From assembly GCA_950097015.1 (NCBI GenBank), contig CATNEN010000001.1, positions 13,826,001 through 13,890,000 of the forward strand: a stretch of DNA of 64,000 bases. The letters are read 5' to 3'. The position numbers and the translations under genes are program-made. The stretch's first letter is position 1, and each line of letters opens with the position of its first letter. The notes below the pieces were generated by a model. That model made no database searches. It saw only the letters and a list, made by a program, of their open reading frames with translations, and had not been told where the DNA came from. Source of the DNA: Macrostomum hystrix (Eukaryota > Animalia > Platyhelminthes). Below, piece after piece: positions 25,712-55,226 of this stretch.

Positions 25712-28700
25712 TCAGGGCACCGCCAGCGACTTCGCAAACCGCTGCAGCTTTGCGTGGACCCAGCCGTCTCTCTGCAGGGCTACCGTCTCCATGGCAACAA
25801 GTCTACCGAACTCAGCTCTGACTGGATGCAGCCGCGCTCTCACCCACAGCTTCCGCTCCTCATCCTCCGAGCTCGAGTGACCGACGATGCAGCTGCGAGT
25901 GGAAATTCGCCACCGCTTCTCCCTGACCCAGCGGATCTTCTCCTCATCCTGGGACTCCATGGCGACGCGTCTCTCTTCCCTGACGGTCTCCATCTGTCGC
26001 AGGCTGAACTCCATGTGCTCAACTTGGTCGCTGTAGTGAGCCAGAGTGAGCAGCTCCTCCAAGTCCGGGTCCTCTTGCAGCTCTGAGCGCCACGCATCGA
26101 AGTCGATTGCTGTGCGATTGCGGAGCAGCTCAGCTTGGAGACTCCAGCTCAGGCAGCGGAAGTTCACGTACAGGTGCTCGGAGCGAGGCTGTGACAGTCT
26201 GGGCTGTGACAGTCTGGCTGTGAGCAGAGTCTGCGTGAACTCGGGAAGGAATGGGAATCGAGAAGGAGTGTCTGCTGGGAGGCAGTACCTCCACGCCCAG
26301 TCCGAGTCTGAAGGCAGCCAATAATCTCCGATATCACCAGGCCTCATTCCACTCTGAACTCTGTGACTCTGGAGCTCCATCGCGAGTCTCTCAGCCTCCT
26401 CGGAGTCTCTGAACTTCAAATGCGCCATGGCGGTCATGCACAGGGCGGCGCACTTGCACCACCGCAGCTGATGCAGGAGACTGAGCTGCCTCATCAGGGT
26501 GTCTCTGTCTGCAGACTCTGACTGCAGCTCGCAAACACAATGGTGCACTACACTGTACACGTCTGCTGACATCTCATAACTATGACCACATTTTTTCCTA
26601 ATCTGAGTGACAGCAGGCGGTGCTGTCAGTGGCAGCAGAGTGAACGGGTGAAAGTAGAAGTTCTCTGACTGCAGAGGTCTCACAAGCTGAGAGGTGAGAC
26701 AATCATCACAAGATGAGAGGTCTCTCATCTGCTCAGCCACTCCGCCGATGTCGCTTCTCAGCTCTCTCAGTCGGTCTCGAACCATCGCCTTCGTTTTGTC
26801 GAAGTCGCCGCCGATTCCTGCGTTCTTGAAGTAGAGCGGAGCTCCGGGCATGAAGAAGTGCGGCATGCACTCATTGGGTGAGCTGCTTGAGTCGATGAAG
26901 CTCAGCATCATGTCGAGAGACTCCTTGAGCAGTGAGATCAGACTCTGAGGCTGCCAAGCTTCAGCATTTGGGTCTGTGCCATGCTCCTTCAGCATGAAGA
27001 AGAGCAGAGTCTTTGCATGGTAGGTCTTGAGTCCAGGAGTGTCCAGAGTGAGTGGCAAATGTTTCTTGAAGATGAACTTGATGATTGAGAACAGCTGTCC
27101 CTGGACTGTGCTCAGCTGTCTCATGGCCTCTTTCTCTTGGAAGCTGAAGCTCACTCTGAGCTCATTGGTCTCATTCGGTCTGGTCGCCCTCACGAGGTGA
27201 ACAGAAGTGTTGCTGTGTCTAATCAGCTTCTTGACTCTGTCCCAACAGAAGCCACTGCAGCACCGGATCGCATGGCACGTGTCCTGAGCAGGCCGCACAC
27301 CGCATGCCTTGGTTGAGACGGCAGGTTGGCTGCCTGCAGTAGGTGATAACTCGTGTTATTTTTAAAAGCTTGTGTCAGTTTGTAAATTATTAAATAACTT
27401 TCAAGCTGGTTAAATCTGGTTAAGCTAAAAGCCTTGAAACACAAAGCCTCTATTAATTGTTGATAATTAATTGTCGCAAAGTTGCGAGAGAAAAACAATG
27501 AGTTTTGAACAACAACTTTTTAAGAAATGCAGTATGCTTGCCTTTAGTTGTTGTAGTTCCCACTAAGTAGTTAGCTGTGAGCACTTTTGACCCCAGCGAG
27601 ACCCAGAGAAATAAGAAGATAACAATATCCGATTACCGATCCGATTTCCGATAACTACCCGATGTCACTCACCCGACCCCATTGGCACCTGTGCGTGACC
27701 CTCCGTGACACGCAGCTTCAGGGCACCTCTGCATTCTTCATTTCTCCCATCGCAGCCGCCCTCCAAATGCAGCAGTTGGCCTTGAACAAGCACAGTCCAG
27801 TCAATGTCTGAGTCAGCCGCTGTCCTGCCGTTCACTTGCACCAGACTGTTGGCCCAGCCCTCTGCGAAGCTGCCTGTCATCTGCATCTGCGAGTTCTGAG
27901 TGAGGACTCGAGCGACTTCTTGCAGCCAGACAGCCATTCTCTGCTGACACTTGGCTCTCTCCTGAGTGAATCCCGCCTCGCTGAGCAGTCGGTGCAGTTC
28001 CTCACTGAGCTGCCTGTCCGTCTCTGGGTCGTCTCTGGGCCTGGAATGATGGGAATTAAGTCGGCTGATGGGTTGTACAGCTGCACAGACTGGCATCTCA
28101 AGCTGATCAGCTGAGAGTCCAGCTGCTGCTGCATTCAGACTGGCATCTCATGCTGATCAGCATAGGGGAGTTTCCAATCAGAATCAGAAACTCACTCAGC
28201 GAGACCCGAGTCGGTGCGGAGTCCAGCTGCCTTTTTCTTTTTTCTGCTGCTGGAAAAGGGCGCAGGTTTAGATTAGTTTTACCCGATACGGTCTGCACGA
28301 GTACAGCAAGGGCAAAAAACGGGTTAAAATATTTTAGAACATAAAAACGGACTTACTTCGAAGTTCTGTTCTCCAGCAGCCGCAGCACCTGCTGATGTCC
28401 CAGCTGCTCCGCCACCTGCGCGCATGTCTGGCCCCGACTGTCCCGATGACTCGCATCCGCTCCTCCGTCTATCAGAGTCTTGGCTGCTCGCACGTGACCC
28501 GCCTCACAAGCTCGCGACAGAGCTGTCCGACCCTGACTGTCTTCAGCTCGCACTGACGCACCGAGAACCACCAGCCCCTCGATGAGCTCGTGATGACCTG
28601 AATCAGCTGCCAGCATGAGAGCAGTGGCTCCTGTGCTGTCGGGCACATCGACATCGAATTCTCTGCTGAATCGCTCGTCATGGAGGAGTGTGAGAGCCAG

Positions 28701-31700
28701 TGCGACATGGCCATGGGAGATGGAGACACAGAGCAGCTGTGTGATCTGAGCTGGCTGCATTCGAGACAGAGTCTGGCTGAGAACATCGTTCCTGCCCTCA
28801 ATGGCCATCGAGGCGGTGAAGCTGAGGACTTGGCTGGACTGGAAGAGCCACTCGGGCTGAAGACCAAGGAAGAGGACGACATCTTCACACTGCTGAGAGC
28901 AAGCGGCGACTGCGCAGACACTTCTAATATTTTCTCTTACTCTTTGGTCAGAAACTTTCTGTTCCAAAAATTTGACCACTTCCAAATGACCATGAAATGC
29001 AGCAGATTCCGCAGCTTCCTTGCAGCACTGATCTCTCAGTGTTGGGTCAGTGATTTTCGAGACCAAATATTGGACCACTTTCAACTGACAATTGGTTGCA
29101 GAAGATTTCGCAACCTCCTTGCAGCACTGATCTCTCAGTGTTGGGTCAGCGAATGTCGGCACCAAAAATTTGACCACTTCCAACTGGCCATTGCTCGCAG
29201 CAGATTTCGCAGCCACCTCGCAGCACTGATCTCTTAGTGTTTGGTCAGCGATTTTCAGGACCAAATATTTGACCACTTCCAACTGACGATTAAATGCAGC
29301 AGATTCCGCAGCTTCCTTGCAGCACTGATCTAAAAGTGTTTTGTCAGCGATTATCGGCACCAAAAATTTGACCACTTCCAACTGACCCTTGATTGCAGCA
29401 GATTTCACAACCTCCTTGCAGCACTGATCTCTCAATGTTTGGTTAGCAATATTCAGCACCAAAAATTTGACCACTTCCCACTGACCCCTGATTGCAGCAG
29501 ATTCCGCAACCTCCTTGCAGCACTGATCTCTCAGTGTTTGGTCAGCGATTGTCAGCACCAAAAATTTGACCACTTCCAACTGACCCTTGATTGCTGCAGA
29601 TTTCGCAACCTTCTTGCAGCACTGATCTCTCAGTGTTTTGTCAGCGATTGTCGGCACCAAAAATTTGACCACTTCCAACTGACCATTGATTTCTGCAGAT
29701 TCCGCAGCCTCCTTGCAGCACTGATCTCTCAGTGTTTTGTCAGCAATTGTCGGCACCAAATATTGGATCACTTCCCACTGACGCTCTCTTGCTGCAGATT
29801 TCACAACCTCCTTGCAGCACCGATCTCTCAGTGTTTTGTCAGCAATTGTCGGCACCAAAAATTTGACCACTTCCAACTGACCCTTGATTGCAGCAGATTT
29901 CACAACCTCCTTGCAGCACTGATCTCTCAATGTTTGGTTAGCAATATTCAGCACCAAAAATTTGACCACTTCCCACTGACCCCTGATTGCAGCAGATTCC
30001 GCAGCCTCCTTGCAGCACTGATCTCTCAGTGTTTTGTCAGCAATTGTCGGCACCAAATATTGGATCACTTCCCACTGACGCTCTCTTGCTGCAGATTTCA
30101 CAACCTCCTTGCAGCACCGATCTCTCAGTGTTTTGTCAGCAATTGTCGGCACCAAAAATTTGACCACTTCCAAATGACCGTTGATTGCAGCAGATTTCGC
30201 AACCTCGTTGCAGCACCGATCTCTCAATGTTTTGTCAGCAATTGTCAGCACCAAAAATTTGACCACTTCCAAATGACCGTTGATTGCAGCAGATTTCGCA
30301 ACCTCCTTGCAGCACTGATCTCTCAGTGTTTGGGCAGCGATTTTTAGCACCAAAAATTTGACCACTTCCAACTGACCATTGATTGCTGCAGATTCTGCAA
30401 CCTCCTTGCAGCACCGATCTCTCAGTGTTTTGTCAGCAATTGTCGGCACCAAAAATTTGACCACTTCCAAATGACCCTTGATTGCTGCAGATTCTGCAAC
30501 CTCCTTGCAGCACTGAACTTTTAGTGTTTGATAGGCAATTGTCGGCACCAAAAATTTGACCACTTCCCACTGACACTCTCTTGCAGCCGATTCCGCAGCT
30601 TCCTTGCAGCACTGATCTCTCAGTGTTTTGTCAGCGATTTTCGGCACCAAAAATTTGACCACTTCCCACTGACGCTCTCTTGCTGCAGATTCCGCAACCT
30701 CCTTGCAGCACTGATCTCTCAGTGTTTGGTCAGCGATTGTCGGCACCAAAAATTTGACCACTTCCAAATGACCCTTGATTGCAGCAGATTCTGCAACCTC
30801 CTTGCAGCACTGATCTCTCAGTGTTTGGTCAGCAATTGTCGGCACCAAAAATTTGACCACTTCCAAATGACCCTTGATTGCTGCAGATTCTGCAACCTCC
30901 TTGCAGCACTGATCTCTCAGTGTTTGGTCAGCGATTGTCAGCACCAAAAATTCGACCACTTCCAAATGACCCTTGATTGCAGCAGATTTCGCAACAACCT
31001 TGCAGCACTGATCTTTTAGTTTTTTGTCAGCAATTGTTAGCACCAAAAAATTGACGACTTCCAACTGACCATAAAATGCAGCAGATTCCGCAACCTCCTT
31101 GCAGCACTGATATTTTACTGTTTGGTGAGCAATTTTCAGCACCAAATATTGCACCACTTCTAACTTACCATTGATTGCAGCTGATTTCGAAGCGTCCTTG
31201 AAGCACTGACGTCTCAGTTTTTGGTCAGCGATTTTCGGCAACAAATATTTGACCACTTCCAAATGACCCTTGATTGCTGCAGATTCTGCAACCTCCTTGC
31301 AGCACTGATCTCTCAGTGTTTGGTCAGCGATTGTCGGCACCAAAAATTTGACCACTTCCAACTGACCATTGATTGCTGCAGATTCTGCAACCTCCTTGCA
31401 GCACTGATCTCTCAGTGTTTGGTCAGCGATTGTCGGCACCAAAAATTTGACCACTTCCAACTGACCATTGATTGCTGCAGATTCTGCAACCTCCTTGCAG
31501 CACCGATCTCTCAGTGTTTGGTCAGCGATTGTCGGCACCAAAAATTTGACCACTTCCAAATGACCCTTGATTGCAGCAGATTTCGCAACCTCCTTGCCGC
31601 ACTGATCTCTCAGTGTTTGGTCAGCGATTGTCGGCACCAAAAATTTGACCACTTCCAACTGACCCTTGATTGCTGCAGATTCTGCAACCTCCTTGCAGCA

Positions 31701-33782
31701 CCGATCTCTCAGTGTTTGGTCAGCGATTGTCGGCACCAAAAATTTGACCACTTCCAACTGACCATTGATTGCTGCAGATTCTGCAACCTCCTTGCAGCAC
31801 CGATCTCTCAGTGTTTGGTCAGCGATTGTCGGCACCAAAAATTTGACCACTTCCAAATGACCCTTGATTGCAGCAGATTCTGCAACCTCCTTGCAGCACT
31901 GATCTCTCAGTGTTTGGTCAGAAATTGTCGGCACCAAAAATTTGACCACTTCCCACGAACGCTCTCTTGCAGCAGATTCCGCAACCTCTTTGCAGCACTG
32001 ATCTCTCAGTGTTTGGTCAGAAATTGTCGGCACCAAAAATTTGACCACTTCCAACATACCATTGATTGCAGCAGATTCCGCAACCTCCTTGCAGCACTGA
32101 TCTCTCAGTGTTTGGTCAGCGATTGTCGGCACCAAAAATTTGACCATTTCCCACGAACGCTCTCTTGCAGCAGATTCCGCAACCTCTTTGCAGCACTGAT
32201 CTCTCAGTGTTTGGTCAGCGATTGTCGGCACCAAAAATTTGACCACTTCCAACATACCATTGATTGCAGCAGATTCCGCAACCTCCTTGCAGCACTGATC
32301 TCTCAGTGTTTGGTCAGAAATTGTCGGCACCAAAAATTTGACCACTTCCAACATACCATTGATTGCAGCAGATTCTGCAACCTCCTTGCAGCACCGATCT
32401 CTCAGTGTTTGGTCAGCGATTGTCGGCACCAAAAATTTGACCACTTCCAAATGACCCTTGATTGCAGCAGATTTCGCAACCTCCTTGCAGCACTGATCTC
32501 TCAGTGTTTGGTCAGCGATTGTCGGCACCAAAAATTTGACCACTTCCAAATGACCCTTGATTGCAGCAGATTTCGCAACCTCCTTGCAGCACTGATCTCT
32601 CAGTGTTTGGTCAGCGATTGTCGGCACCAAAAATTTGACCACTTCCCACTGACGCTCTCTTGCTGCAGATTCCGCAACCTCCTTGCAGCACTGATCTCTC
32701 AGTGTTTGGTCAGCGATTGTCGGCACCAAAAATTTGACCACTTCCAAATGACCCTTGATTGCAGCAGATTTCGCAACCTCCTTGCAGCACTGATCTCTCA
32801 GTGTTTGGTCAGCAATTGTCGGCACCAAAAATTTGACCACTTCCAAATGACCCTTGATTGCAGCAGATTCCGCAACCTCCTTGCAGCACTGATCTCTCAG
32901 TGTTTGGTCAGCAATTGTCGGCACCAAAAATGTGACCACTTCCAACTGACCATTGATTGCAGCAGATTCCGCAACCTCCTTGCAGCACTGATCTCTCAGT
33001 GTTTTGTCAGCAATTGTTGGCACCAAAAATTTGACCACTTCCAACTTACCATTTATTGCAGCAGATTTCGCAGCCTTCTTGCAGCACTTATCTCTTCTTT
33101 TTTGGTCAGCAATTGTCGGCAAAAAATATTTTACCACTTCCAACTGACCCATTCTTGCAGCAGATTTCGCAGCCTCCTTGCAGCACTGAACTCTCAGTTT
33201 TTCGTCAGCGATTGTCGGCAGCAAAAATTTGACCACTTCCAACTGACCCCTGATTGCAGCAGATTCCGCAAACTCCTTGCAGCACTGATCTCTCAGTGTT
33301 TGGTCAGTAATTGTCGGCAGCAAAAATTTGACCACTTCCAACTTACCATTGATTGCAGCAGATTTCGCAGCCTTCTTGCAGCACCGATCTCTTTTTTTTT
33401 GGTCAGCAATTGTCGGCAACAAATATTTTACCACTTCCAACTGACCCATTCTTGCAGCAGATTTCGCAGTCTCCTTGCAGCACTGAACTCTCAGTTTTTC
33501 GTCAGCGATTGTCGGCACCAAAAATTTGACCACTTCCAACCGACCCTTGATTGCTGCAGATTCCGCAGCCTCCTTGCAGCACTGATCTCTCAGTGTTTGG
33601 TCAGCAACTGTCTGCACCAGAAGTTTCACAATTTCCCAGTGACGGTGATTCGCAGCAAGACGCCAATGCACTTTACACAGTCGATCCCTTTTTGAGCTGC
33701 TTTTGATTGATTTTAAGTGATTTCGAACTTCGGTTTCCAGCCCCTCTTCTACAGCTCGCCTAAAGCTGATTTTCTGTCCCAT
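25712..33782 (-). CDS. Ankyrin-repeat array + Mab-21/cGAS-like nucleotidyltransferase (cGLR) copy A; complement(join(25712..27333,27673..28139,28196..28249,28357..33782)), about 2,522 aa
   Basis: The donor GTAAGT overlaps the apparent stop of the 1809-aa ORF, and the phases (2,2,1) are compatible. NTase motifs TGSFAEG...DSDID, third acidic site QDTCHAIRC, HLV, ELRVSFSFQE, KTYHAKTLLF, CMPHFFMP. About 47 33-aa ANK-like repeats plus canonical ANK repeats (GATALMLAA, GRTALSRAC). The 54-nt mini-exon is the least certain part. Confidence 0.85.
28960..33600 (-). repeat. Coding 99-bp tandem array (about 47 ankyrin-like units CCKEVAESAAxxxxLEVVKFLVPTIADQTLRDQ)
   Basis: Directly visible 99-bp periodicity; reading frame open throughout. 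Confidence 0.95.
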
Positions 33783-34776: not shown

Positions 34777-36475
34777 ATGTCAGGAATTCGCGAGCTCGGT
34801 TATTACAAGGTGAGCGATGAAAGTTGCAGTCATTTTCTCACACCTATTTAGTGCACTGAAATCAGTGCACAGCCCATGTTTTCTAGGTGAAGTACAGACG
34901 ATGCAAGAAGATCCTGAATGAGGTATGGTCGATGTTCGCACCTGCAACCCAGTGTTTCGGATTTAATCTGTCATTTCTGATAACCACCTGACCAATAAAT
35001 GCATCATTCCAGACCTGCCCAATATGCCTTGAAGACTTTGCTATTAAAGAGCCAGTCACTGTGTCCCTCTGTCATCACGCCTTTCATGACAAGTTAGTGC
35101 TTCTATTTCATGTTTGTACTTTCAGTTTTGCTCAGTGATAGATATAAGCTTTGAGGATTATTAAACTATACTATATAAAGCTTATAAGAAAGTGGTTCTT
35201 GGAGTTAAGACTCTTAAATCTTAGTCAGACCGCAAAGCCGGTGTGGGCAGCTCTGGTCACAAAGGGCTTTGGTAGGGCCGTCTCACACCGTCTAATCGCA
35301 CAGCCATTGTCTATGGTCTGTCTCCTCAGCAGACGCCCATGAGATTATGACTTGTTTTCCTAGCTTATTTCTGAGTGTCTCTGCGAGGCAAATGAATGAT
35401 GACAAAGGACAAAATCGTAGTGGACAAAGTCAGGTCGACCTCTATGTCATACTGGGCGGTCCAGGGCCACTGCCGATACCGGGAAAAACTGCCGCGAATT
35501 GCGAAGCGACGGTTGGCGGTCCAGAGGTCCAATGGCGTCCGGTCCGTAGGGTGGGCCGAGCAGACGAAAAGGTGCTGCACATTCTCTGGCGCCCGAAGGC
35601 ACCGAGGACAGGTGTCGGGCACGGTGGGTTCAAGACGGCGCTGATAGGAGGCCAGGTGTCAGGCACGGTGAGGTCAAGACGGCGCTGATAGGAGGCCAGG
35701 TGTCAGGCACGGTGGGGTCAAGACGGTGCTGATAGGAGGCCAGGTGTCAGGCACGGTGGGGTCAAGACGGTGCTGATAGGAGGCCAGGTGTCAGGCACGG
35801 TGGGGTCAAGACGGTGCTGATAGGAGGCCAGGTGTCAGGCACGGTGATGTCAAGACGGTGCTGATAGGAGGCCAGGTGTCAGGCACGGTGGGGTCAAGAC
35901 GGTGCTGATAGGAGGCCAGGTGTCAGGCACGGTGGGGTCAAGACGGTGCTGATAGGAGGCCAGGTGTCAGGCACGGTGGGGTCAAGACGGTGCTGATAGG
36001 AGGCCAGGTGTCAGGCACGGTGGGGTCAAGACGGTGCTGATAGGAGGCCAGGTGTCCCGAGCGAAGCTATCAGAGGGTGACACGCATGCCCCGCTGGAGG
36101 CGGGATTCGGTCGGATGAATCGGCGGTGGCGGCTGGTCGATGACCGCGGCGTTGAAGCTAGTTGTGAACGCCGGCGGAGTGGACAGCGAGGACAAGAGGA
36201 CGGACGGGCTCAGGGAGAGGAGACTGAGGCAGGGGCTGGTGAACTCTTAATGACCTATGATGTCATAATAGGCTTTGGTGGTACAGCCAGTGTGCCAGCT
36301 CTGGTCACAATGGACTTTCCCGCGACTGTCTCACGGCATTCAGTCAAGAGTGTCAATCGCGCATTTCAGCTGCCTCGAGCCCTGGCTGCGAGAGCACAAC
36401 AAGTGCCCATTGTGCAAGTCGGACATTGGCAGCGCGAACGAGCGAACGCCCCTGACTTCGATGTCGTCTGCATGA
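34777..36475 (+). CDS. Small RING-H2 (C3H2C3) protein, RNF24/RNF122-like; join(34777..34809,34887..34922,35013..35092,36370..36475), 84 aa (5' end uncertain)
   Basis: Spliced product MSGIRELGYYKVKYRRCKKILNETCPICLEDFAIKEPVTVSLCHHAFHDNCLEPWLREHNKCPLCKSD... has all 8 zinc ligands; junctions GT-AG and phase-compatible. Confidence 0.75.
35500..36240 (-). mobile_element. 3' fragment of a LINE ORF2 inside the RING gene's last intron
   Basis: Minus-strand PPPPIHPTESRLQRGMRVTL*QLRSGHLASYQHRLDPTVPDTCPRCLRAPENVQHLFVCSAHPTDRTPLDLWT is a typical non-LTR C-terminal CCHC region; contains an internal stop. Confidence 0.75.
35618..36056. repeat. 44-bp minisatellite derived from LINE ORF2 sequence, about 10 copies
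   Basis: Unit GGCACGGTGGGGTCAAGACGGTGCTGATAGGAGGCCAGGTGTCA. Confidence 0.93.
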
Positions 36476-36847
36476 CACGTCATGAACCAATCAACCGATC
36501 AATCAATCAATCAAAAGACACTGCTCAACATTTCTCAGTCTCGGACATCAACGCAAACTTTGTCAGTTGCTTTGAAAGACACCCGGCAAAGACAGATTTT
36601 TTGCTCAGTGATTGAGCACTGCATTTTTGTGCACACACACGGTGCCATTTCAAACTTGCTAGATAAATTTACCATGAAGTATATTTTGATTCTTGTTTTT
36701 AAACAATTTCTGACCACGTGACCACATTCACATCGTTTATTGGCTAATAGCTGCCTGAAAATTTACTCTAAAATTTGAGCAAGCCATTTCACAGTTATTG
36801 AGTATTTCAGCTTTTTCTTCACGATATTTCACGACTGATGCTTGCAT

Positions 36848-37131
36848 CATGAGTTTGAGTCTCATGAGTTTGAGTCTCATGAGTTTGAGTCTCATGAGTT
36901 TGAGTCTCATGAGTTTGAGTCTCATGAGTTTGAGTCTCATGAGTTTGAGTCTCATGAGTTTGAGTCTCATGAGTTTGAGTCTCATGAGTTTGAGTCTCAT
37001 GAGTTTGAGTCTCATGAGTTTGAGTCTCATGAGTTTGAGTCTCATGAGTTTGAGTCTCATGAGTTTGAGTCTCATGAGTTTGAGTCTCATGAGTTTGAGT
37101 CTCATGAGTTTGAGTCTCATGAGTTTGAGTC
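36848..37131. repeat. 15-bp perfect minisatellite (CATGAGTTTGAGTCT)n
   Basis: About 19 copies. Confidence 0.97.
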
Positions 37132-37334
37132 AAGATCAGTTTAATAAACCAGTGATTCAGGATGGCCATGGTTAGTGTGTCTTTAAACATTTTCCTCGCA
37201 CCTTTTTACTGTTTTTTACTTCTGGAGTTGTTTTGAAACTCTTAAAATACTTTAAAGTTCCAAAAACTGACTTGAGAAACATGCTAGCCTGCTCGAAAGT
37301 TAACCAAAAGCAAGTATGAATTTTGGTCACAGCT

Positions 37335-38122
37335 CACTGACCCACACTGCACTGACCCACACTGCACTGACCCACACTGCACTGACCCACACTGCACTGA
37401 CCCGCACTGCACTGACCCACACTGCACTGACCCACACTGCACTGACCCACACTGCACTGACCCACACTGCACTGACCCACACTGCACTGACCCACACTGC
37501 ACTGACCCACACTGCACTGACCCACACTGCACTGACCCACACTGCACTGACCCACACTGCACTGACCCACACTGCACTAACCCACACTGTACTGACCCAC
37601 ACTGCACTAACCCACACTGCACTGACCCACACTGCACTGACCCACACTGCACTGACACACACTGCACTGACCCACACTGCACTGACCCACACTGCACTGA
37701 CCCACACTGCACTGACCCACACTGCACTGACCCACACTGCACTGACCCACACTGCACTGACCCACACTGCACTGACCCACACTGCACTGACCCACACTGC
37801 ACTGACCCACACTGCACTGACCCACACTGCACAGACCCACACTGCACTGACCCACACTGCACTGACCCACACTGCACAGACCCACACTGCACTGACCCAC
37901 ACTGCACTGACACACACTGTACTGACCCACACTGCACTGACCCACACTGCACAGACCCACACTGCACTGACCCACACTGCACTGACACACACTGTACTGA
38001 CCCACACTGCACTGACCCACACTGCACTGACCCACACTGCACAGACCCACACTGCACTGACCCACACTGCACTGACACACACTGTACTGACCCACACTGC
38101 ACTGACCCACACTGCACTGACC
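37335..38122. repeat. 15-bp minisatellite (CCCACACTGCACTGA)n downstream of ANK-cGLR copy B
   Basis: About 52 copies. Confidence 0.95.
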
Positions 38123-39070
38123 CCTGTAGGTGATGTATGACCAGTGTTTATTGTTCGCATTTAGTTATCATGATCAGGATTTTTCGCTCAAAACCAAATA
38201 ACACAGCAGATTCAAATATTGAACAAGATAAAATATTTAATGATTTACAGGTGAGGAACTCCTAACAGAAGAAATCAGCCATTTACAATGCTGCAATCGT
38301 CAATGACGGACACAAAAAGAACTCAGAGAGCAGAGCTGATGTTCTCACAGTTTCAGAGCATCAGCCAACTTTATCGTCAAGTTTTTAGCCAAGCCAGTGC
38401 TCAGATTGACATTTACATAAGACAGCATGCGAAATGACTCTGCAACGACTGGGGAGAGCTCGACTTTGAAGCGAAACTCAGAGCAAATCGAGTCAAGGAC
38501 GCCGCCGTTGCTGATAGTTTAATTAGCCTTTGACCGAGAGGGGCATACTTCACTTTCTTACCAACTTCAGCCGACGTCCGTTAGCTTTATATAATTCAGT
38601 TAACTTTCACTAGCTTCTTCCGTTAACTTTACGAAACCTTCTGTTAAATTCGCTAACTTAACCGTTAAATTCCGTTAACTTTCGCTAGCTTCCGTTAACT
38701 TTATTTAATTCCGTTAACTTTCGCTATCTTCGTAGCTTCATCAAACTTCTGTTAACTCCAGCTTACTTTCGTATGCTTCCGCTAAATTTCTTCGAATTCC
38801 CTCAGCTTTCTAGCCTTGCAGCAGCTGTTTTGGCTGTGGTTGCTGTTCCCTCAGCTGGAAAACAGCAAAACTGAGGAACTTGCTTCTAAAAGCTTTCTCA
38901 AGATATCATACGCTCGTAAAAGTAAAAAAGCTGGGATGAAAAGCAGAAAAATCTTACTTTAAATTTACGAAATTAAAAGTCGGTCGAATCAAAGTCCACC
39001 AACGTCAGACACCACAACCTGCTGCATTATCCAGCGATGAGCTGAAAGAAACGCCCTGCCACCTTCAGCT

Positions 39071-42000
39071 TCATGACAGGCGGTGACTTCGGCAGCTGTC
39101 TTCACTAGCTGTCATGCGGCTTCCTGCCCGTCTGCTCGACCTGCAGTCGGACAGGGCAGACTCACTCTCCGTTTCCATAGAAACTGAATGTGATTGATTT
39201 GATTTTCTCAGTCGCTTCAGCTTCTCCCTGACCCAGCGGATCTTCTCCTCATCCTGCGTCTCCATGGCGACGCGTCTCTCGTCCCTGACGGTCTCCATCT
39301 GTCGCAGGCTGAAATCCACGTGCTCAACTTGGTCGCTGTAGTGAGCCAGAGTGAGCAGCTCCTCCAAGTCCGGGTCCTCTTGCAGCTCTGAGAGCCACGC
39401 ATCGAAGTCGATTGCTGTGCGATTGCGGAGCAGCTCAGCTTGGAGACTCCAGCTCAGGCAGCGGAAGTTCACGTACAGGTGCTCAGAGCGAGGCTGTGAC
39501 AGTCTGGCTGTGAGCAGAGTCTGCGTGAACTCGGGAAGGAATGGGAATCGAGGCGGAGTGTCTGCGGGGAGGCAGAACTTCCACGCCCAGTCCGACTGGA
39601 TGGAATTCAGGTTTTTTACCTCATCTGGACTCAAGCCACGATTGACTTGCCAGTATTGCAAATCCTGAGTGATGTTTTTAGCTTCCTTGGAGTTTCCGAG
39701 TTTCAAATTTACCATAATCACCGAACACAGGGTGGCGCACCTGCACCATCGCAATGAAAGCAGGATGCTGAGCTCCCTCATCAGAGTGTCTCCATCGCAT
39801 TCTTTGAATTGCAGCTTGCTCATGCAATTGTGCATAATACTGTACACGTCAACGAACTTGAAATGTCGATCATAATAATTTGTCATTTCTCTAATCTGAG
39901 TGACAGCAGGTGGCGCTGTCAGTGGCAGCAGAGTGAACGGGTGAAAGTAGAAGTTCTCTGACTGCAGTGGTCTCACAAGTCTCCTCATCTGCTCAACCAC
40001 TCCGCCGATGTCGCTTCTCAGCTCTCTCAGTCGGTCTCGAACCATCGCCTTCGTTTTGTCGAAGTCGCCGCCGATTCCTGCGTTCTTGAAGTAGAGCGGA
40101 GCGTCGGGCATGAAGAAGTGCGGCATGCACTCATCGGGTGAGCTGCTTGAGTCGATGAAGCTCAGCATCATGTCGAGAGACTCCTTCAGCAGTGAGATCA
40201 GATTCTGAGGCTGCCAAGCTTCAGCATTCGGGTCTGTGCCATGCTTCTCCAGCATGAAGAAGAGCAGAGTCTTTGCATGGTAGGTCTTGAGTCCAGGTGT
40301 GTCCAGAGTGAGTGGCAAGTGTCTCTTGAAGATGAACTTGATGACTGAGAACAGCTCTGAGCTCATTGGTCTCATTCGGTCTGGTCGCCCTCACGAGGTG
40401 AACAGAAGTCAGCTCTGAATTAGTTTTTATCAACTGTTCAACCTGAGGCTCACAGAATGGGCTGCAGCACCGGATCGCATGGCACGTGTCCTGAGCAGGC
40501 CGCACACCGCATGCCTTGGCTGAGACGGCAGGTTGGCTGCCTGCAGCATTGATGAACGGAACTTCATAAACGTTCAACTAACAGATACACGGTGTTGTGC
40601 ATCGGACTGATTACTCACCTGACCCTACAAAGACCTGAGCATGACCCTGTGCTACCTGTAGCCTTGTTGCTAATTCACATCCAAGTTTGCGCTTGCAGCC
40701 GCCCTCTAGATGCGAACTTTGCACTTTAGCCAGCACAGTCCAGTCAATGTCTGAGTCAGCCGCTGTCCTGCCGTTCACTTGCACCAGACTGTTGGCCCAG
40801 CCCTCTGCGTAGCTGCCTGTCATCTGCCTGCCATCCTGGGCGAGGACTTGAGCGACTCCTTCCAGCCAGTCAGCCATTCTCTGCTGACACTCCGCTCTCT
40901 CCCGAGTGAATCCCGCCTTGTTGAACAGTCGGTGCAGTTCCTCACTGAGCTGCCTGTCCCGCTGAGTGTGGTCAATAAATCTGGAAAGGAAGCTAAGAAT
41001 CATTGGAAAGCCATTTAGCTGCTCATCCCTTCGTTCTAGAAACGATTCTGTTCTGGGAATCCAACGAGAAACTGGTCCATTGGTGTTTCTCATCGTGACA
41101 AACGCTGCATTAAAAAAAGAAAAAATATTTCTTACTCGTCGAGTTCCGAATTGCCACAGTTCCCTGTCTTGGCTCCCTTCTTGGCGCTGGAATTCAAATA
41201 TACGCAACAATTGCACTCGTCAAATGTAAATAGGTAATTATTCATTATTAATACAATATAAGCATCTCCAAATTCTATAGGATGTTTTTCATAATTCAAG
41301 GGCCACTACTCCATTTAGCTTCTAATTTAATAGTCCCGGTCATACGCTGTGGACCTTCATGTCTATAGTTTTTTTAACCATTTTTCTCACCTTCGGGTCT
41401 CCAGCAGCCGCAGCACCTGCTGATGTCCCAGCTGCTCCGCCACCTGCGCGCACGTCTGGCTTCGACTGTCCCGATGACTCGCATCCGCTCCTCTGTCCAT
41501 CAGGGTCTTGGCTGCTCGCACGTGACCCGCCTCACAAGCTCGCGACAGAGCTGTCCGACCCTGACTGTCTTCAGCTCGCACTGACGCACCGAGATCCACC
41601 AGCCTCTCAATGAGCTCGTGATGACCTGCATCAGCTGCCACCATGAGAGCAGTGGCTCCTGTGCCGTCTGGCAGATCGACATGTTCTTTGCTGAAGCGCT
41701 TGTCATGGAGGAGTGTGAGAGCCAGTGCGACATGGCCATGGGAGATGGAGACACCGAGCAGCTGTGTGATCTGAGCTGGCTGCATTCGAGACAGAGTCTG
41801 GCTGAGAACAGAATTTCTGCCCTCAATGGCCATCGAGGCGGTGAAGCTGATGATGTTTCCTGATTGAAGCAGCCATTCAGGCTCGATGTGAAGGAAGGCA
41901 GCCACACCTTCCTGGAGTCGAGAGCAGGCCGCAACAGCGCATTGGCGACGGAAGTGGATTAGCAAGTCAGCATTCGACACAGACTCAATTAGGAACTTGA

Positions 42001-42445
42001 GCACCTCCAACTGACCGGTCCTGGCAGCGGACTCAGCAGCCTTTCCACAACACTCATCTCTTTCAACCGTGAGGAACTCTACAAAGAATTTGACTAGCTC
42101 AAGATGACCTGATCTCGCAGCTGATCTAACAAGCTTTTTACATTGCTGATCTCTGACAGTTGGATCTGAAACTCTCAGCACAAGACATCGCGCCACTTCC
42201 AACTGACCAGACTTGACCGCTGTCTCAGCAGCCAACAGGCAGCACTGATCCTTTTCCCTATCGCCATGAATTGTCTGGAGAAGAAATTTAGCCACATCCA
42301 GATGACCATGGCAGGCTGCAACTCGCGCACTCGCCTTGCAAATAGAATTTCTCATCTCGATGCTGTCAGCTTTGCGAACATGGAGACGAACTTTCCTCAT
42401 GTTGCCTGTTCTCGCAGCTTCAGTGATGCTCATTTTCTGGCCCAT
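39071..42445 (-). pseudogene. Ankyrin + Mab-21/cGLR copy B, frameshifted; exons 42445..41391, 41186..41136, 40980..40619, 40540..39071
   Basis: Same exon structure and phases as copy A, with TGSYAEG...DSDID intact. A 59-bp deletion near 40355 removes VSFSFQEKEAMRQLSTVQGQ and shifts the frame (premature stop at 40221-40223). Confidence 0.75.
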
Positions 42446-42949: not shown

Positions 42950-44468
42950 GGTGGTGGGTGATGGATTGATGGTGGTGGGTGATGAATTCGATGGTGGTGG
43001 GGTGATGGATTGATGGTGGTGGGTGATGAATTCGATGGTGGTGGGGTGATGGATTCGGTGGTGGTGGGGTGATGGATTCGGTGGTGGTGGGGTGATGGAT
43101 TCGATGGTGGTGGGTGATGGATTCGATGGTGGTGGGTGATGGATTCGGTGGTGGTGGGTGATGGATTCGGTGGTGGTGGGGTGATGGATTCGGTGGTGGT
43201 GGGGTGATGGATTCGGTGGTGGTGGGGTGATGGATTCGGTGGTGGTGGGGTGATGGATTCGGTGGTGGTGGGGTGATGGATTCGGTGGTGGTGGGGTGAT
43301 GGATTCGGTCGTGGTGGGGTGATGGATTCGGTGGTGGTGGGGTGATGGATTCGGTGGTGGTGGGGTGATGGATTCGGTGGTGGTGGGGTGATGGATTCGG
43401 TGGTGGTGGGGTGATGGATTCGGTCGTGGTGGGGTGATGGATTCGGTCGTGGTGGGGTGAAGGATTCGATGGTGGTGGGGTGATGGATTCGATGGTGGTG
43501 GGGTGATGGATTCGATGGTGGTGGGGTGATGGATTCGATGGTGGTGGGTGATGGATTCGATGGTGGTGGGGTGATGGATTCGATGGTGGTGGGGTGATGG
43601 GTTCGGTGGTGGTGGTGTGATGGATTCGATGGTGGTGGGGTGATGGATTCGATGGTGGTGGGTGATGGATTCGATGGTGGTGGGGTGATGGATTCGATGG
43701 TGGTGGGGTGATGGGTTCGGTGGTGGTGGTGTGATGGATTCGATGGTGGTGGGGATTCGGTGGTGGTGGGGTGATGGATTCGGTGGTGGTGGGGTGATGA
43801 ATTGATGGTGGTGGGGTGATGGATTCGGTGGTGGTGGGGTGATGGATTCGATGGTGGTGGGGTGATGGATTCGATGGTGGTGGGGTGATGGATTCGATGG
43901 TGGTGGGGTGATGGATTCGATGGTGGTGGTGTGATGGGTTCGGTGGTGGTGGGGTGATGGATTCGATGGTGGTGGGGATTCGGTGGTGGTGGGGTGATGG
44001 TTTCGGTGGTGGTGGTGTGATGGATTCGATGGTGGTGGGGATTCGGTGGTGGTGGGGTGATTTTCTCGGTGGTGGTGGGGTGATGGATTCGGTGGTGGTG
44101 GTGTGATGGATTCGATGGTGGTGGGGATTCGGTGGTGGTGGGGTGATGGATTCGATGGTGGTGGGGATTCGGTGGTGGTGGGGTGATTTTTTCGGTGGTG
44201 GTGGGGTGATGGATTCGATGGTGGTGGGGATTTGTTGGTGGTGGGGTGATGGGTTCGGTGGTGGTGGGGTGATGGATTCGATGGTGGTGGGGTGATGAAT
44301 TCGATGGTGGTGGGGTGATGGATTCGATGGTGGTGGGGTGATGGATTCGATGGTGGTGGGGTGATGGATTCGATGGTGGTGGGGTGATGGATTCGATGGT
44401 GGTGGGGTGATGGATTCGATGGTGGTGGGGTGATGGATTCGATGGTGGTGGGGTGATGGATTCGATGG
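42950..44468. repeat. G-rich satellite of about 22 bp (GGTGGTGGGGTGATGGATTCGAT/GGT)n, left arm
   Basis: Tandem repeat. Confidence 0.95.
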
Positions 44469-45966
44469 CCCGCTGAAAAAATGGGCTGCTTCTTCGGCTG
44501 CTTCTGCCCGGAAGCACCGATGCTTCCACAAAAAAGCCGCTGAATGTGGGAAGCATCGCAATTCGATGCTTCTTAACTCGGAAGCACTGGAAGGAAGCAG
44601 CCGAATGTGGGAAGCTTCATTCTTGCCTAATCTTGTCTTTTTTGAATTCGAATAGAAGTATATATTTAGACACATGCATCTATATATACGAGCTAGTTGT
44701 ATCATTAGTATGCATAGACATTGGGATATTGATTTCGATATTTATATATTAAACGTCCAGATTGAGATACATAAAGCTATGCAATATGAAATCCAGAGAC
44801 ATCCATATAATAACTGTATGATTGAAAGGTGATATATATACGTGTCTATTGTGAGTGGGATTTATTATAAAATTTGGACTTCGTAGTAAAAAATTATTCA
44901 GGTCGCTCCGTTAACAAGCTGAAGATGGAAGCCCCATGTCCGGCAAAGATAAATGTACTGAAATTGTACTGCAGAGAAATCGGTCAGCAACCTACGGAGG
45001 AGGCTCTCCAGCAGGCTTTCAAGCAGGATCGTGCAAATCTGCTGCTCACTGCAAAACCGGAGGTCTTGGCGGCTCGCCGAACCCAAACGAAAGAGTGGAA
45101 AGAGAATGCGAAGGAGTCGAATAGAGCAGGTGACAATCAGGCCAGTGGAGGGGCGAGGCATGCCAAGCAGGCGAAGAATATGAAGGAGACCAGGCAGGCG
45201 ACACAGGTAGCTTCGACGACAGCTGCGGCTGCATCCAACTGGCAGCGCGCCGCACTGTGGTCGACCACTGTGCTTTTTGCGGACACCGTCGAAGACACCG
45301 AGACCGACCAGCTGTCCGATGACCCGAAGTATGAGGTCGTCCCACCAGAACTATTATGAACACTGATCCCAGCGTGGCGCAAATTTGTAGGATTTGAGTA
45401 GCAGGACCTTCGCTGCGTATTATGAATTATTGACTAGAGATGTGGAGGGAAAGGGATATTCTAAGTTAGGGATTTAGTGTTAAAATAATATATATAGTCG
45501 CATTTTCACGATAAACATAGTAAATACATCATGGTAAAGATGCAGTCAGATTGCCACGGCAGTGATCGAAAACAATTTTGGTTCAGAAAAAAATGTGCCG
45601 CCTTTTTGTCCGCATTTTTTCTGCAATGTCTGCTGAGCTAACATGGGTTATCCAGGATCGGTCGACACTAAACCGCCTGTCTTAGAAAGAGTACATTCAT
45701 ATACATTAGTTAGTACATGTATACATACGTACGTACAATAGAAGCAACGTTTTTAGCTGCTTATAATGTTAGCTGTCTATAATGGGAAGCAGACGAGGAA
45801 GCACCGCTAAGAAAGCATCACTTCAAAACTATTCAGCCGCTTCTTCGGCCGCTTCCGCACAATTAACGGCGACAATCGCTGCTTCTTTTACACTGCCGAG
45901 ATAGGGCCCCAATTCGGCTGCTTCTGGCCAAACTGTGCGCCAAAAAGCAGCCCATTTTTTACAGGA
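44469..45966. mobile_element. Non-autonomous TIR DNA transposon (CACTA/EnSpm-like termini) inserted in the satellite; carries a 161-codon ORF (44874..45359)
   Basis: Left end CCCGCTGAAAAAATGGGCTGCTT and right end AAGCAGCCCATTTTTTACAGGA are inverted repeats. Subterminal GCTTC/GAAGC repeats; probable 2-bp GG TSD. Superfamily assignment is inferred. Confidence 0.65.
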
Positions 45967-47007
45967 GGTGGTGGGGTGATGGATTGATGGTGGTGGGTGA
46001 TGGATTCGGTGGTGTTGGGGTGACGGATTCGGTGGTGTTGGGGTGATGGATTCGGTGGTGTTGGGGTGATGGATTGATTGTGTTGGGGTGGTGGATTGAT
46101 GGTGGTGGGGTGATGGATTCGGTGGTGTTGGGGTGATGGATTCGGTGGTGTTGGGGTGATGGATTCGGTGGTGTTAGGGTGATGGATTCGGTGGTGTTGG
46201 GTGATGGATTCGGTGGTGTTGGGGTGATGGATTCGGTGGTGGTGGGGTGATGGATTCGGTGGTGGTGGGGTGATGGATTCGGTGGTGGTGGGGTGATGGG
46301 TTCGGTGGTGGTGGGGTGATGGGTTCGGTGGTGGTGGGGTGATGGATTGATTGTGTTGGGGTGATGGATTCGGTGGTGTTGGGGTGATGGATTGATTGTG
46401 ATGGGGTGATGGATTCGGTGGTGTTGGGGTGATGGATTGATTGTGATGGGGTGATGGATTCGGTGGTGTTGGGGTGATGGATTCGGTGGTGGTGGGTGAT
46501 GGATTCGGTGGTGTTGTGGTGATGGATTCGGTGGTGTTGGGGTGATGGATTGATTGTGGTGGGTGATGGATTGATTGTGTTTGGGTGATGGATTGATTGT
46601 GTTGGGGTGATGGATTGATTGTGATGGGGTGATGGATTCGGTGGTGTTGGGGTGATGGATTCGGTGGTGGTGGGTGATGGATTCGGTGGTGTTGTGGTGA
46701 TGGATTCGGTGGTGTTGGGGTGACGGATTGATGGTGGTGGGTGATGGATTGATTGTGTTTGGGTGATGGATTGATTGTGTTGGGGTGATGGATTCGGTGG
46801 TGTTGGGGTGATGGATTCGGTGGTGTTGGGGTGATGGATTCGGTGGTGGTGGGTGATGGATTCGGTGGTGTTGTGGTGATGGATTCGGTGGTGTTGGGGT
46901 GACGGATTGATGGTGGTGGGTGATGGATTGATTGTGTTTGGGTGATGGATTGATTGTGTTGGGGTGATGGATTCGGTGGTGTTGGGGTGATGGATCGATG
47001 GTGGTGG
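45967..47007. repeat. G-rich satellite of about 22 bp, right arm (GGTGTTGGGG/GATTGATTGT variants)
   Basis: Same family as 42950..44468. Confidence 0.95.
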
Positions 47008-50000
47008 AGTGACATACACGGTGCTGTGAAAGACGGTGGTATCAGCTTCTTTGGTATCCAATGCCTGATACCACTGTCTGTCACTTTACCACCACCGAAT
47101 TCCCCGGGATGACAGACAGGTTGTGGTGTGGAGTGCCAGACGCGGTGGTATCAGGCATTGTGGCGACGTGACGGGAAAGCCGATAAGGAGACAAGAAAGG
47201 TGGAGAGCAAAGATGCTTGGCGGCCGAGAATAAAGAGCAAAAGCAACGTTTAGCGCACTTTCTGAAACATGAATCAAGTCGTGACGCGTCGAGATAATTC
47301 TGGAAAGTGTACTTTTTCCCAGAAGCACAACTGCATTCAGTAAGTCAATCGGCACTTTGCTCAGCGTACCAATCTTTTTAATGCTTTTAGCATGTACACC
47401 ACACGAGTCTGCATGATCTCAGCCTTACATATCTGCTTGGCTTAACGTCGTAGATAAAAAAATCTTTTCATTCTGTAGCATGTAAATAAACATACTCGTT
47501 TATAATATATATAACAATAGCCCCCTAAAGTTTTATGAATTGACGAGACCAAACACGATAAATGGCTACTGTTTAACTACTGTAAGAAAAAAGCCCTAAG
47601 ATTTTTGTCGCGTATATTTTTGCTTATTAAATTTTAAACAGAAAAAACTTTTGCTGCTGATCTGGTTGATACAAATAGTATTTTACAGTACGGAAAGCCT
47701 GGTCGGAAATTCTATTAGACAGTGGGAATTGGAGTACGAATACAGGAGTAGCTTTTGCTTACAAATTTTGACCAACATACTACTAGTAAGTAGTGTCGTT
47801 AAAATACATTTGGAATGATTTATTAATACAAATAGAAAACTGACTTCATTTTAGAGAGAGGAGACGGACTCAGAGAATTCCGACCAATGGCAGGGTTGCA
47901 TTTTGAGTTTGAAAAAAACGCTTTTAGTTTATAAAAACACATAAAAAAAAGCTACGAGTTTTTTGCCTGAAAAATGGTACAGTATAATATAAAGATACAG
48001 TAAGTTGGGTACTGTTTTGTGCTGTTTTTTTGTTGCAAAACGCCAGATTTGAATAGGTTTTCGTCATAGAATACACGAGTAGTATATAGTGCAATGCTTA
48101 GTAAATAGGATATAGAAAACACGTACGGTACTAAATACTTCGTTAGAAAGTGAGACAGAGACAGTAAGAGAAAAACAGGGAGGGAGAGACAAACATCAGC
48201 TCAGTCCAATGCCAGCTAGTGTGCACACACCAAAGCTTTGAAAGACTAAACTAGCTTACCTAACAAATACAATTATTAGTTTAATAAGTATAGAATACGA
48301 TTACAAGATTATAGAGTAACAGTAGAGCGGTGTATTGCAGTAAAATTATTAATCTACCAGTAAAGTACAGCAGTACTGTAATATTACTATTGATTACAAA
48401 ATAGGAAACGATAAGACTGAGAGAGGCTGAGACAGGGGAAGAAATGCACAATAGCCTGTCTCGTAAAAGAAAAAACAAACAAAATAAAATAGTACAGGAA
48501 TTAAGACAGGAAGAATGGCGGAAAGGAGGCTGTGATTGGGATTAGTTCGGGATTAATTACTCTCAGAAAGAAAAGGTTCTGTTGTCAAGGGCAACTTATT
48601 GGGGAATTATTGAAGCTACAGAACAGCGGAGACAGCTAGGAAAAATGAGTGGGAAGAATTAGCAAGTCGAAGGCGCCGCTCACCAGACCGTACACAAAAA
48701 ATGTACCATAGGCTGTGCATGTACTGTACTGTACTCTGGGGCCAAGTGCGCCACTCGAACAGGGGAAAGCCAATTAAAACACGCCGTCTAGAAGAATCGA
48801 TTCGCGCCAGCAATCAATCAATCAACAATCGCGTACAGCCAGTTGGCAGAAGCAGTCACGGGGACACGCAAGACAACCGCTCACCTCTGCTGTCCATTAA
48901 AAAGACATTTATATAGGCAAAACTACAGTTGATAAAATATGACAAAAATGATAAGAAATGGACAGCAACAGCCAGCAGCGGCGGTGAACTCTGGGGCCGC
49001 GAACCAAACTCTTTCACTACACAAGCGACAAAAAGACACAGAAGACTCAGAACTCTTTGTGCAATGCGCAAACTAAAAGACGGATAAATGAAAAAAGCAT
49101 GGCAAATGGCCGACTGAGGCGGAGTTGAAACAGGCAATCAATGTGAATCGAAAACTTCCCTAATATAGAATTGTGACACGCATTTTATAAGCAACTGCTG
49201 CGGGCAATGAAGGACACGGTAGGCACCAGTCATTTAAGAGGCCGGCTAGGAGCAGTTATAGACAGGCATCACGGGAGCAACAAATAAAAGTAGACAAGCA
49301 GTAGTGTCAGTGACACAAGATGAGCGACAGGATGTTCGATGCCACTGATTGATTGATTGACATGTGGTTGGATTTTTAACAAACTTGCTGCTCAGATGAC
49401 AGATGGGAATCTGCGAATCTCGATTTGTCCTACAGTCTGTTTCTTCTTTTGGTTATTTTTGGGAAATTTTTGCCTAGTGTTGAGTTTCAGACTCCTAAAT
49501 TGAGGTCGGGAGTTCGAATTTTAGCTCAAGGAATGTAATTTATATCCAGAATTAGCTGGAGCACAATTCAGTTGGATTTGGGCCTAAACCAGTCCGCGGA
49601 CACAATAGCTGTATACATCCGACTAAAATGATTTTTTCAGCCTTCTGCAACATTCTACTATGTGAGTAGTTTGTTCGGCTGTTCAGATCCCAGATTTCAA
49701 GAGTTTTGACACGCACAAAATAGGCAACACGACAAAGAATGAGTAATTAGGCGGCAAAACAGTGATACAATGTAGCGAAGAAAATGTGCTGTTAGTCTCG
49801 GCTCTGTCAAATTTCTAAAAAACAAACAGAAAACTTCATGGCGTTTTCTACCGCACTTTTCTTGCATATAGAAAGCGCCAAAAAGTGGCCTCTCTAAAAG
49901 TGAAGAAAAAGCGCCTTCCAGAAATTTAAAATCAGAGCAGAGAGAGGGAGACACAGAGACGGGAAAGGCAAAGCGGGACTTTGCGCTGCGGCAATTTCTG

Positions 50001-54950: not shown

Positions 54951-55226
54951 AATCCCTAGTAGCCCGCAAATCCTAAATCCATGGCCCCACACACAAAGTC
55001 ATGTCTAGAGGCAACACCAAATAAGGCATAAAATGATTCCTACATCTGTAGTATTATATTAAAATCAATAAAAGTATAAACATTACCAAGAGCAGCATTA
55101 GCATTTTTAAATGCACATTTAAATAAAGACAGGCTTATAAAGAGCACAAGAAAGAAGTTTGAATTTTTTAAGAATAAACAAAATCTTTGCGCTATACAAG
55201 CAGAATGAAATCAATTTGATTGGGAT

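Follow-up and report, generated by a model that had tools for sequence, protein, structure and literature searches.

A four-exon gene of the flatworm Macrostomum hystrix fuses a long ankyrin array to a cGAS-like nucleotidyltransferase

Among the pattern-recognition receptors of animals, the cGAS-like receptors (cGLRs) have recently come to be recognised as a major class. Most of these receptors have neither a known ligand nor a known product, and the ankyrin (ANK) repeats appended to some are unexplored. The present analysis concerns a locus in the genome of the flatworm Macrostomum hystrix (Platyhelminthes). The window, i.e., the whole stretch of DNA that was analysed, has a length of 64,000 nucleotides (positions 13,826,001 to 13,890,000 of the forward strand of contig CATNEN010000001.1, GenBank assembly GCA_950097015.1), and coordinates are those of the window unless a contig is named. 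On the minus strand lies one spliced gene with four exons, in which an ANK array is fused to a Mab-21/cGAS-like nucleotidyltransferase (NTase); this structure is well supported. The exons sum to 7,467 nt, which is 2,489 codons (Table 1). A preliminary description of the locus had proposed that several open reading frames (ORFs) are spliced into one such gene, and this has been borne out by RNA across the junctions, by the layout of the paralogs and by fused gene models in Macrostomum lignano. The encoded protein of ~2,489 aa is, on balance, probably an innate sensor of the cGLR type.

The first exon contains an ORF of 1,809 codons with an ATG start (28353..33782, minus strand), which terminates in ...AAG followed by TAA. 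The end of this ORF is a splice donor, as had been claimed: GTAAGT occupies positions 28356-28351 and the TAA (28355-28353) lies within it. All three introns are of the GT..AG type and every exon is open in its own phase, as can be seen from the coordinates and the per-exon translations. Eleven paralogs share this exon layout, and the N-terminus encoded by exon 1 is conserved in the close ones.

The RNA evidence consists of contigs from four public runs (X7, X8, X1, and X3) belonging to three studies. X7 and X8 derive from the same organism, X1 carries another organism code, and X3 is a wastewater metatranscriptome. The best runs, X7 and X8, hold about one-fifth of the sampled words and no run holds more than 20%, so the RNA support rests on short, partly paralogous contigs; some of those in X7 and X8 match the locus at ≥99%. 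The contigs cover the exons, with zero depth over 27342-27717 and 28094-28187. The joint from 28357 to 28249 (CT..AC on the plus strand, i.e., GT..AG on the strand of the gene) occurs in contigs from three runs of two studies (X7, X8, and X1) and leads into a mini-exon that is open in the right phase, exactly where the preliminary description had put it. The far end of the mini-exon (28196) is joined to 28040 in X8 and X1 contigs (reported as 28037/28195, with two bridging letters and one mismatch at 28038). Here the gene model had to be corrected, as the acceptor had been placed at 28140/28139. Both acceptors keep the frame, giving 2,489 aa (28040) or 2,522 aa (28139). The acceptor at 28040 reads TTCCCATCATTCCAG followed by G, and is conserved as ...CATCATTCCAG followed by GC in all 11 aligned paralogs; the M. 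lignano models P0001 (PAA62074.1, BOX15_Mlig034155g1) and P0005 (PAA73301.1) run unbroken from ANK repeats via a short linker to the NTase, without the 33 extra residues of the longer version. The rejected acceptor lies in an intronic duplication that is confined to this copy and one paralog (L008). The third junction, 27673/27333, was retained: a contig of X3 has a loose end at 27312 which crosses ...GGGTCGG followed by GCAACCAGCC..., corresponding to this splice in paralogous sequence, depth falls to zero over the first of the two gaps given above, and the gene models of M. lignano read across the junction without a break.

The stop codon inside the donor site and an in-frame ATG at 28096, upstream of exon 3, would also fit two separate genes, one encoding an ANK-only protein that ends at the TAA and the other a separate Mab-21 protein. 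This reading is largely refuted and now hardly credible: spliced joints between exon 1 and exon 2 occur in three runs, paralogs have lost the ATG at 28096 or have it out of frame, and all of the M. lignano models are fusions. Since the 75 nt that precede exon 3 show conservation, the same ATG was considered as the start of an ANK-less isoform, and was rejected as coding. This conserved stretch (~75 nt, 28041-28115, minus strand) is the 3′ part of intron 2 and is 85-95% conserved in 11/11 paralogs; intron 3 is unalignable. It is non-coding, because paralogs have 1-nt indels in it and have lost the ATG. It contains an inverted repeat of 9 nt (TCAGCTGAT ... ATCAGCTGA in the paralogs) and may be a splicing or regulatory element.

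Table 1. Features of the ANK-NTase gene and of its neighbouring paralog, in window coordinates.
Feature	Position	Strand	Remarks
Exon 1	28357..33782	(-)	5,426 nt; ATG at 33782; start MGQKIS...; whole ANK region; phase 2 at its end, followed by the GTAAGT donor
ANK-like array	28887..33539	(-)	47 tandem units, each exactly 33 aa (99 nt), gap-free
Degenerate linker repeats, then canonical ANK repeats	28357..28886	(-)	...TGATALMLAADSGHHELIE... in the canonical repeats; abut the enzyme part
Intron 1	28250..28356	(-)	107 nt, GTAAGT...CCAG; joint seen in X7, X8, and X1 contigs
Exon 2	28196..28249	(-)	54-nt mini-exon; basic stretch (SRKKKKAAGLRTDSGLA); phase 2 in, phase 2 out; conserved in paralogs
Intron 2	28041..28195	(-)	155 nt, GTGAGT...TTCCAG; holds the rejected acceptor 28140/28139
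Exon 3	27673..28040	(-)	368 nt; N-terminal spine helices and first half of the NTase core
Intron 3	27334..27672	(-)	339 nt, GTGAGT...TGCAG; without conservation in paralogs
Exon 4	25712..27333	(-)	1,619 nt coding (27333-25715); stop at 25714-25712
Family-specific C-terminal extension	25715..26686	(-)	324 aa; AlphaFold 2 model with family alignment, mean pLDDT 82.1
Paralog B	39071..42445	(-)	352-aa ANK ORF; same three introns and phases

The ORF of exon 1 is made up mainly of tandem 33-residue repeats that match ankyrin profiles (Pfam Ank_2, E 3e-161; Ank_4, E 9e-119; Ank, E 3e-95). In the DNA, Tandem Repeats Finder (TRF) reported a period of 99 nt with 47.1 copies, 89% matches and 0% indels (28964-33626). 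The units of the array are atypical, as read from the sequence: the canonical TPLH is replaced by CCKE, with a pair of cysteines, the stretch that leads up to the G-H turn exceeds that of canonical ANK repeats by three residues, and the loop is shorter. The best stretch for the Pfam Ank profile is at residues 1750-1781, and the corresponding part of P0005 was modelled as ANK repeats. Positions which vary between units are mainly 30-33 and 1 (types IKGH-L, INGQ-L, and RERQ-W), and further 9, 10, 14, 19, 24, and 26. The N-terminus of exon 1 (33765-33782, minus strand) has the form MGQKIS, MGQKTS or MGQHIG within a close subfamily that includes the loci L014, L016, L017, L018, and L024. It fits the N-myristoylation pattern G-{EDRKHPFYW}-x(2)-[STAGCN]-{P}, and the array has ~90 Cys-Cys pairs; together, these might hint at lipidation or membrane association, a suggestion drawn purely from residue patterns.

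The array had been called freshly amplified, which overstates its youth. Mean DNA identity between its units is 86.5%, and just four pairs of units are identical, so the amplification is not a fresh one; dS inside the array (~0.16) is like that between copies of the gene (0.07-0.16). This bears on the possibility that the gene is a decaying or relaxed copy, in which the ANK array has undergone runaway expansion via unequal crossing-over and other paralogs do the work. Consistent with this, dN/dS within the array is ~0.83, the ratio of synonymous to nonsynonymous changes among distinct variants (29:93) is close to that expected under neutrality, paralog B next to the gene has already been disrupted (see below), and the length of the ANK exon differs widely among neighbouring copies. 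However, the array has 122 distinct variants and yet the 5.4 kb contain zero stops (P ~0.003 if neutral) and zero indels, so that the ORF of the array is maintained; the splice sites and catalytic residues are all intact; X7 and X8 have the contigs that match the locus at ≥99%; and long arrays recur, since a second paralog has an ANK frame of 1,607 aa. Taken together, relaxation is improbable.

Exons 3 and 4 encode the NTase. The catalytic set of the cGLR/Mab-21 NTase superfamily (G-S ... [DE]-x-[DE] ... [DE]) was found in full: the GS at 27874-27869 (M-T-G-S-F-A-E-G-W) and the D-I-D at 27808-27800 (S-D-I-D-W) in exon 3, and the third catalytic Asp at 27283-27281 (R-P-A-Q-D) in exon 4. Exon 4 also encodes SFSFQE at 27151-27134 (L-R-V-S-F-S-F-Q-E-K-E) and KTYHAK at 27028-27011 (L-K-T-Y-H-A-K). 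Thus, all of the motifs that had been reported as intact (GS...DxD...D, SFS-E, and K-x-YH-x-K) are present. When ANK-free members of the family with identities down to ~25% are aligned, the columns of GS, D.D, and the third Asp remain conserved. Values of dN/dS for exon 4 against paralogs are 0.44-0.70, which indicates purifying selection on an exon that nevertheless evolves fast, a common feature of immune multigene families.

The bilobal Mab-21/cGAS fold was recognised in three ways: by a Pfam match, by a family profile and by a structural model. Together with the Ank matches, a hit to Pfam Mab-21_C (27.6 bits on the ORF 25712..27298, cut-off 24.1, match at ~27082-26834) bears out the two domains that had been proposed; a search with exon 3 alone against Pfam gave nothing significant. 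A first profile search of the Protein Data Bank (PDB), with alignment A1, was swamped by ANK matches and was repeated with ANK-free members (A2). This family profile, which includes the exons of the window, matched cGAS (E 1e-10) and cGAS-like receptor 1 (8gjy, E 1.3e-10), followed by MAB21L1 (E 2.4e-6) and MB21D2 (E 1.8e-4); judged by these E-values, the family appears nearer to cGAS and cGLR1 than to MAB21L1 and MB21D2. Because intron 3 interrupts the NTase core, the relative P0005 was folded instead. This protein of 709 aa has an identity of 57% over exon 4 (phmmer) and of 66% to exon 3 (alignment A1), and yielded an AlphaFold 2 model with a mean pLDDT (predicted local distance difference test) of 86.6 and a pTM (predicted template modelling score) of 0.79. 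The top Foldseek matches of this model were all cGAS, with probability 1.00. In VIA-align, residues 110-423 superposed on residues 162-521 of human cGAS with Z 20.2 and a root-mean-square deviation (rmsd) of 3.6 Å over 269 residues, in keeping with the kinship to cGAS that had been suggested, and the model aligned with oyster Cv-cGLR1 with Z 19.2. In the model, G153-S154 follow β1, D175 and D177 open β2, and D236 is part of the core strand that follows, which is the classical arrangement. The N-lobe has a conserved Cys/His-rich insert (27673-27800 and 27240-27333, minus strand; H..C.C ... GH ... CC.YP in the family consensus), which may be a metal site that replaces the missing zinc thumb of cGAS.

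Beyond the NTase, the protein continues into the C-terminal extension, which had been described as helical. The model, which is of the window's own sequence, agrees: it consists of stacked helical hairpins with a small β insert. Foldseek returned nothing for it at E ≤ 0.001, and Pfam and the ESM Atlas gave no match. Its best VIA Z values against the full PDB are ~8 (maximum 8.2), to TPR proteins (PlcR, KLC1, and subunits of the APC), which is within the background for helical proteins. As modelled, the extension would be a TPR-like domain peculiar to the family, for which no clear known relative was found.

The gene is one member of a large family. A search of the 220-Mb assembly with exon 4 gave at least 81 matches, which is a lower bound on the number of copies; most are without stops and many lie in tandem clusters on contig C1. 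The best named relative is only 75% identical, whereas paralogs within the assembly reach 92%. The named relatives are all from M. lignano and are annotated as hypothetical, "ANK_REP_REGION" or "Mab-21 domain-containing" proteins. The family is lineage-specific, as had been surmised, and tandemly amplified. In sampled paralogs, the open ANK frame ends ~1.0-1.1 kb upstream of exon 4, and these frames range about five-fold in length, from ~330 to ~1,810 aa, the longest of the type being that of the present gene. The 1,607-aa ANK frame mentioned above lies upstream of paralog L008 (C1:11414680-11418408, minus strand), and contig C39 (C39:20415113-20416075, minus strand) has a 2,726-aa frame that is more remote, with 29% identity; giant arrays therefore recur in the family. 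Paralog B, the neighbour within the window, does share its intron positions and phases with the long gene, as had been stated, but it is a broken gene: 59 nt are deleted at 40355/40354, with loss of SFS..E and a shift of the frame, and beyond this point lies a further, in-frame deletion of 33 nt. Having lost both motif and frame, paralog B is probably a pseudogene beside an intact copy.

The remainder of the window is largely occupied by minisatellites (1958-25368, 35604-38123, 42950-47012, and 53877-59238), with periods of 10-60 nt and 10-128 copies according to TRF. These create long spurious ORFs, "pentapeptide" Pfam matches and strong blocks of GC skew. Similar minisatellite arrays lie between family members at other loci. 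An ORF of 481 aa (6415-7860, minus strand) matches the rhodopsin family of seven-transmembrane proteins (PF00001, E 1e-9), and represents an unrelated gene of the G protein-coupled receptor type.

How might such a protein work? In the order of the polypeptide, 47 Cys-Cys ANK units and a few canonical ANK repeats are followed by the basic linker of the mini-exon, the cGAS-like NTase and the TPR-like domain. For this protein we infer enzyme activity, sensing of a ligand by the ANK repeats, and an immune role. The enzyme would be kept inactive until something binds to it, the likeliest case being a protein or another ligand at the surface of the ANK repeats or at the C-terminal domain; the ligand-bound enzyme would then make a nucleotide second messenger, and this would be read by a downstream receptor, possibly a STING-like ORF on contig C2. 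That ORF (C2:9104529-9104996, minus strand; L013:1501-1968) was the sole one found in a genome-wide scan with Pfam STING_LBD. Its weak matches in the PDB, 30 in number, are without exception STING, and the alignments fall on the hallmark beginning of the ligand-binding domain (motif IGEAFAWNFAFTFLRLILPKL); a word-index search for homologues found none and the Atlas was uninformative. This ORF might serve the expanded cGLR family as its receptor, and it is best regarded as a lead.

A more specific proposal is that the ANK solenoid is a diversifiable surface which senses pathogen proteins or other non-nucleic-acid ligands and so switches on the fused cGAS-like enzyme. The variable ANK residues are at the end of helix 1, before the G-H turn, and the number of repeats differs between paralogs; the variable positions of the unit are those that, we assume, are randomised in designed ANK binders. 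This proposal is tentative, and we regard it as unlikely to be right. If it were true, evolution in a flatworm would have produced an extensive set (80+ genes) of cGLRs that sense proteins.

Several points weigh against regarding the gene as one that encodes an enzymatic innate sensor. RNA contigs are 90-99% identical to the locus and some therefore derive from paralogs; no single contig covers the whole gene, and contigs cannot reveal the ends of transcripts. Within the array, as described above, dN/dS is close to neutral. The match of the STING-like ORF to PF15009 (25-25.6 bits) is below the cut-off of 27. Pfam PF03281, the N-terminal, NTase half of Mab-21, is unmatched even at E 10, so the N-lobe must be very divergent, and the NTase structure was predicted for the 57%-identical relative P0005 rather than for the protein of the window. 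Finally, M. lignano relatives (e.g., #89, PAA86972.1, and #90, PAA45980.1) were among 140 proteins cloned for a biochemical screen of cGLRs, and for these rows the active-enzyme column of Table S3 is empty (Li et al. 2023, PMC9980059).

Some of these points would be expected if the protein were a non-enzymatic Mab-21 scaffold, in which the fold has been kept as an adaptor and the ANK and TPR-like parts recruit partners. This possibility is modelled on proposals for MAB21L1, MB21D2, and some crustacean Mab21 proteins; going by the title of a 2026 paper (PMC12928593), the crustacean proteins reportedly act outside nucleic-acid sensing. A scaffold would account for the absence of recorded activity in the published screen, for the undetected PF03281, and for the presence of two large protein-interaction modules. 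Yet GS, D.D, and the third Asp are conserved out to ~25%-identical relatives, which would be unexpected if catalysis were dispensable, and the profile appears nearer to cGAS and cGLR1 than to the two proteins on which the proposal is modelled. A scaffold is therefore unlikely, without being far-fetched.

A role of the family outside immunity, i.e., in the germline, in reproduction or in the control of transposable elements, with an expansion that was not driven by pathogens, would suit a neighbourhood rich in minisatellites and retroelements. In locusts, cGLRs are said, in the title of a preprint, to be linked to Gypsy derivatives. However, by analogy with all of the characterised, catalytically intact cGLRs, which are immune sensors (Li et al. 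2023, PMC9980059), such a role seems decidedly improbable. The reading which is preferred here thus remains that of an innate sensor of the cGLR type.

The locus adds a corrected gene model and an extreme size of array, rather than a new principle. Macrostomum is a laboratory model in which RNA interference and transgenesis are available, making it tractable for asking what ANK-fused cGLRs sense. A search of the literature found no study of the biology of cGAS or cGLRs in Macrostomum.

Compared with vertebrate cGAS (7ftu, 4k9b, and 6ct9), the catalytic domain, as modelled in the relative, superposes with Z 20 and an rmsd of 3.5-3.8 Å over 260-270 residues, and the SFS..E and K.YH.K motifs are common to both. 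In contrast to cGAS, the present protein has no insertion at the place of the zinc thumb (between SFS..E and K.YH.K), has a longer loop from GS to D.D and carries the Cys/His-rich insert in the N-lobe; identity is ~13-19%. With the animal cGLRs, such as Cv-cGLR1 (8gjw, to which the Z of 19.2 refers) and cGLR1 (8gjy), it has in common the Mab-21 NTase fold and the GS / [DE].[DE] / [DE] site. MAB21L1 and MB21D2 (5eog and 7lt1) belong to the same superfamily, with the weaker profile matches given above. For MAB21L1-type proteins the synthesis of a second messenger is not established (Li et al. 2023, PMC9980059), whereas the catalytic set of the present gene is intact.

Li et al. (2023, PMC9980059), who surveyed cGLRs, found that 87% of these proteins have a single domain and that some are fused to TPR or ankyrin modules, ANK-fused cGLRs being present in Stylophora pistillata. 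Set against these mostly single-domain proteins, the present one has ~50 ANK repeats, of the atypical Cys-Cys kind, and a TPR-like C-terminal domain of ~320 aa. In the same survey, most flatworms are without cGLRs beyond Mab21-like proteins; at least 81 copies in one genome contrast with a phylum said mostly to lack them. The M. lignano sequences in its Table S3 show the same GSFAE.WGN...NG...D.D signature as the present family, and are handled in that work as cGLRs. Thus, both the ANK-cGLR architecture and the Macrostomum family are already catalogued.

The closest known relatives are those of M. lignano. P0001 (exon 4 75% identical) and P0005 are of the same family, and have in common with the present gene the order CC-type ANK repeats, linker, NTase and C-terminal extension, as well as the junction sequences and the catalytic motifs. 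Two further M. lignano models, P0009 (PAA93319.1, 2,111 aa) and P0004 (2,381 aa), have a C-terminal caspase (Peptidase_C14, E 3e-27) or WSC and RING domains; these additions are either effector fusions or merged neighbouring genes. In the M. lignano ANK-Mab-21 proteins such as P0001 and P0005, the ANK regions are far shorter (P0001 has 1,217 aa in total) than the 47 units and 1,809-codon ORF described here, and none of these models is identical to the present gene. Since ANK-cGLR fusions have already been described, this gene can be seen as a large addition to a known kind.

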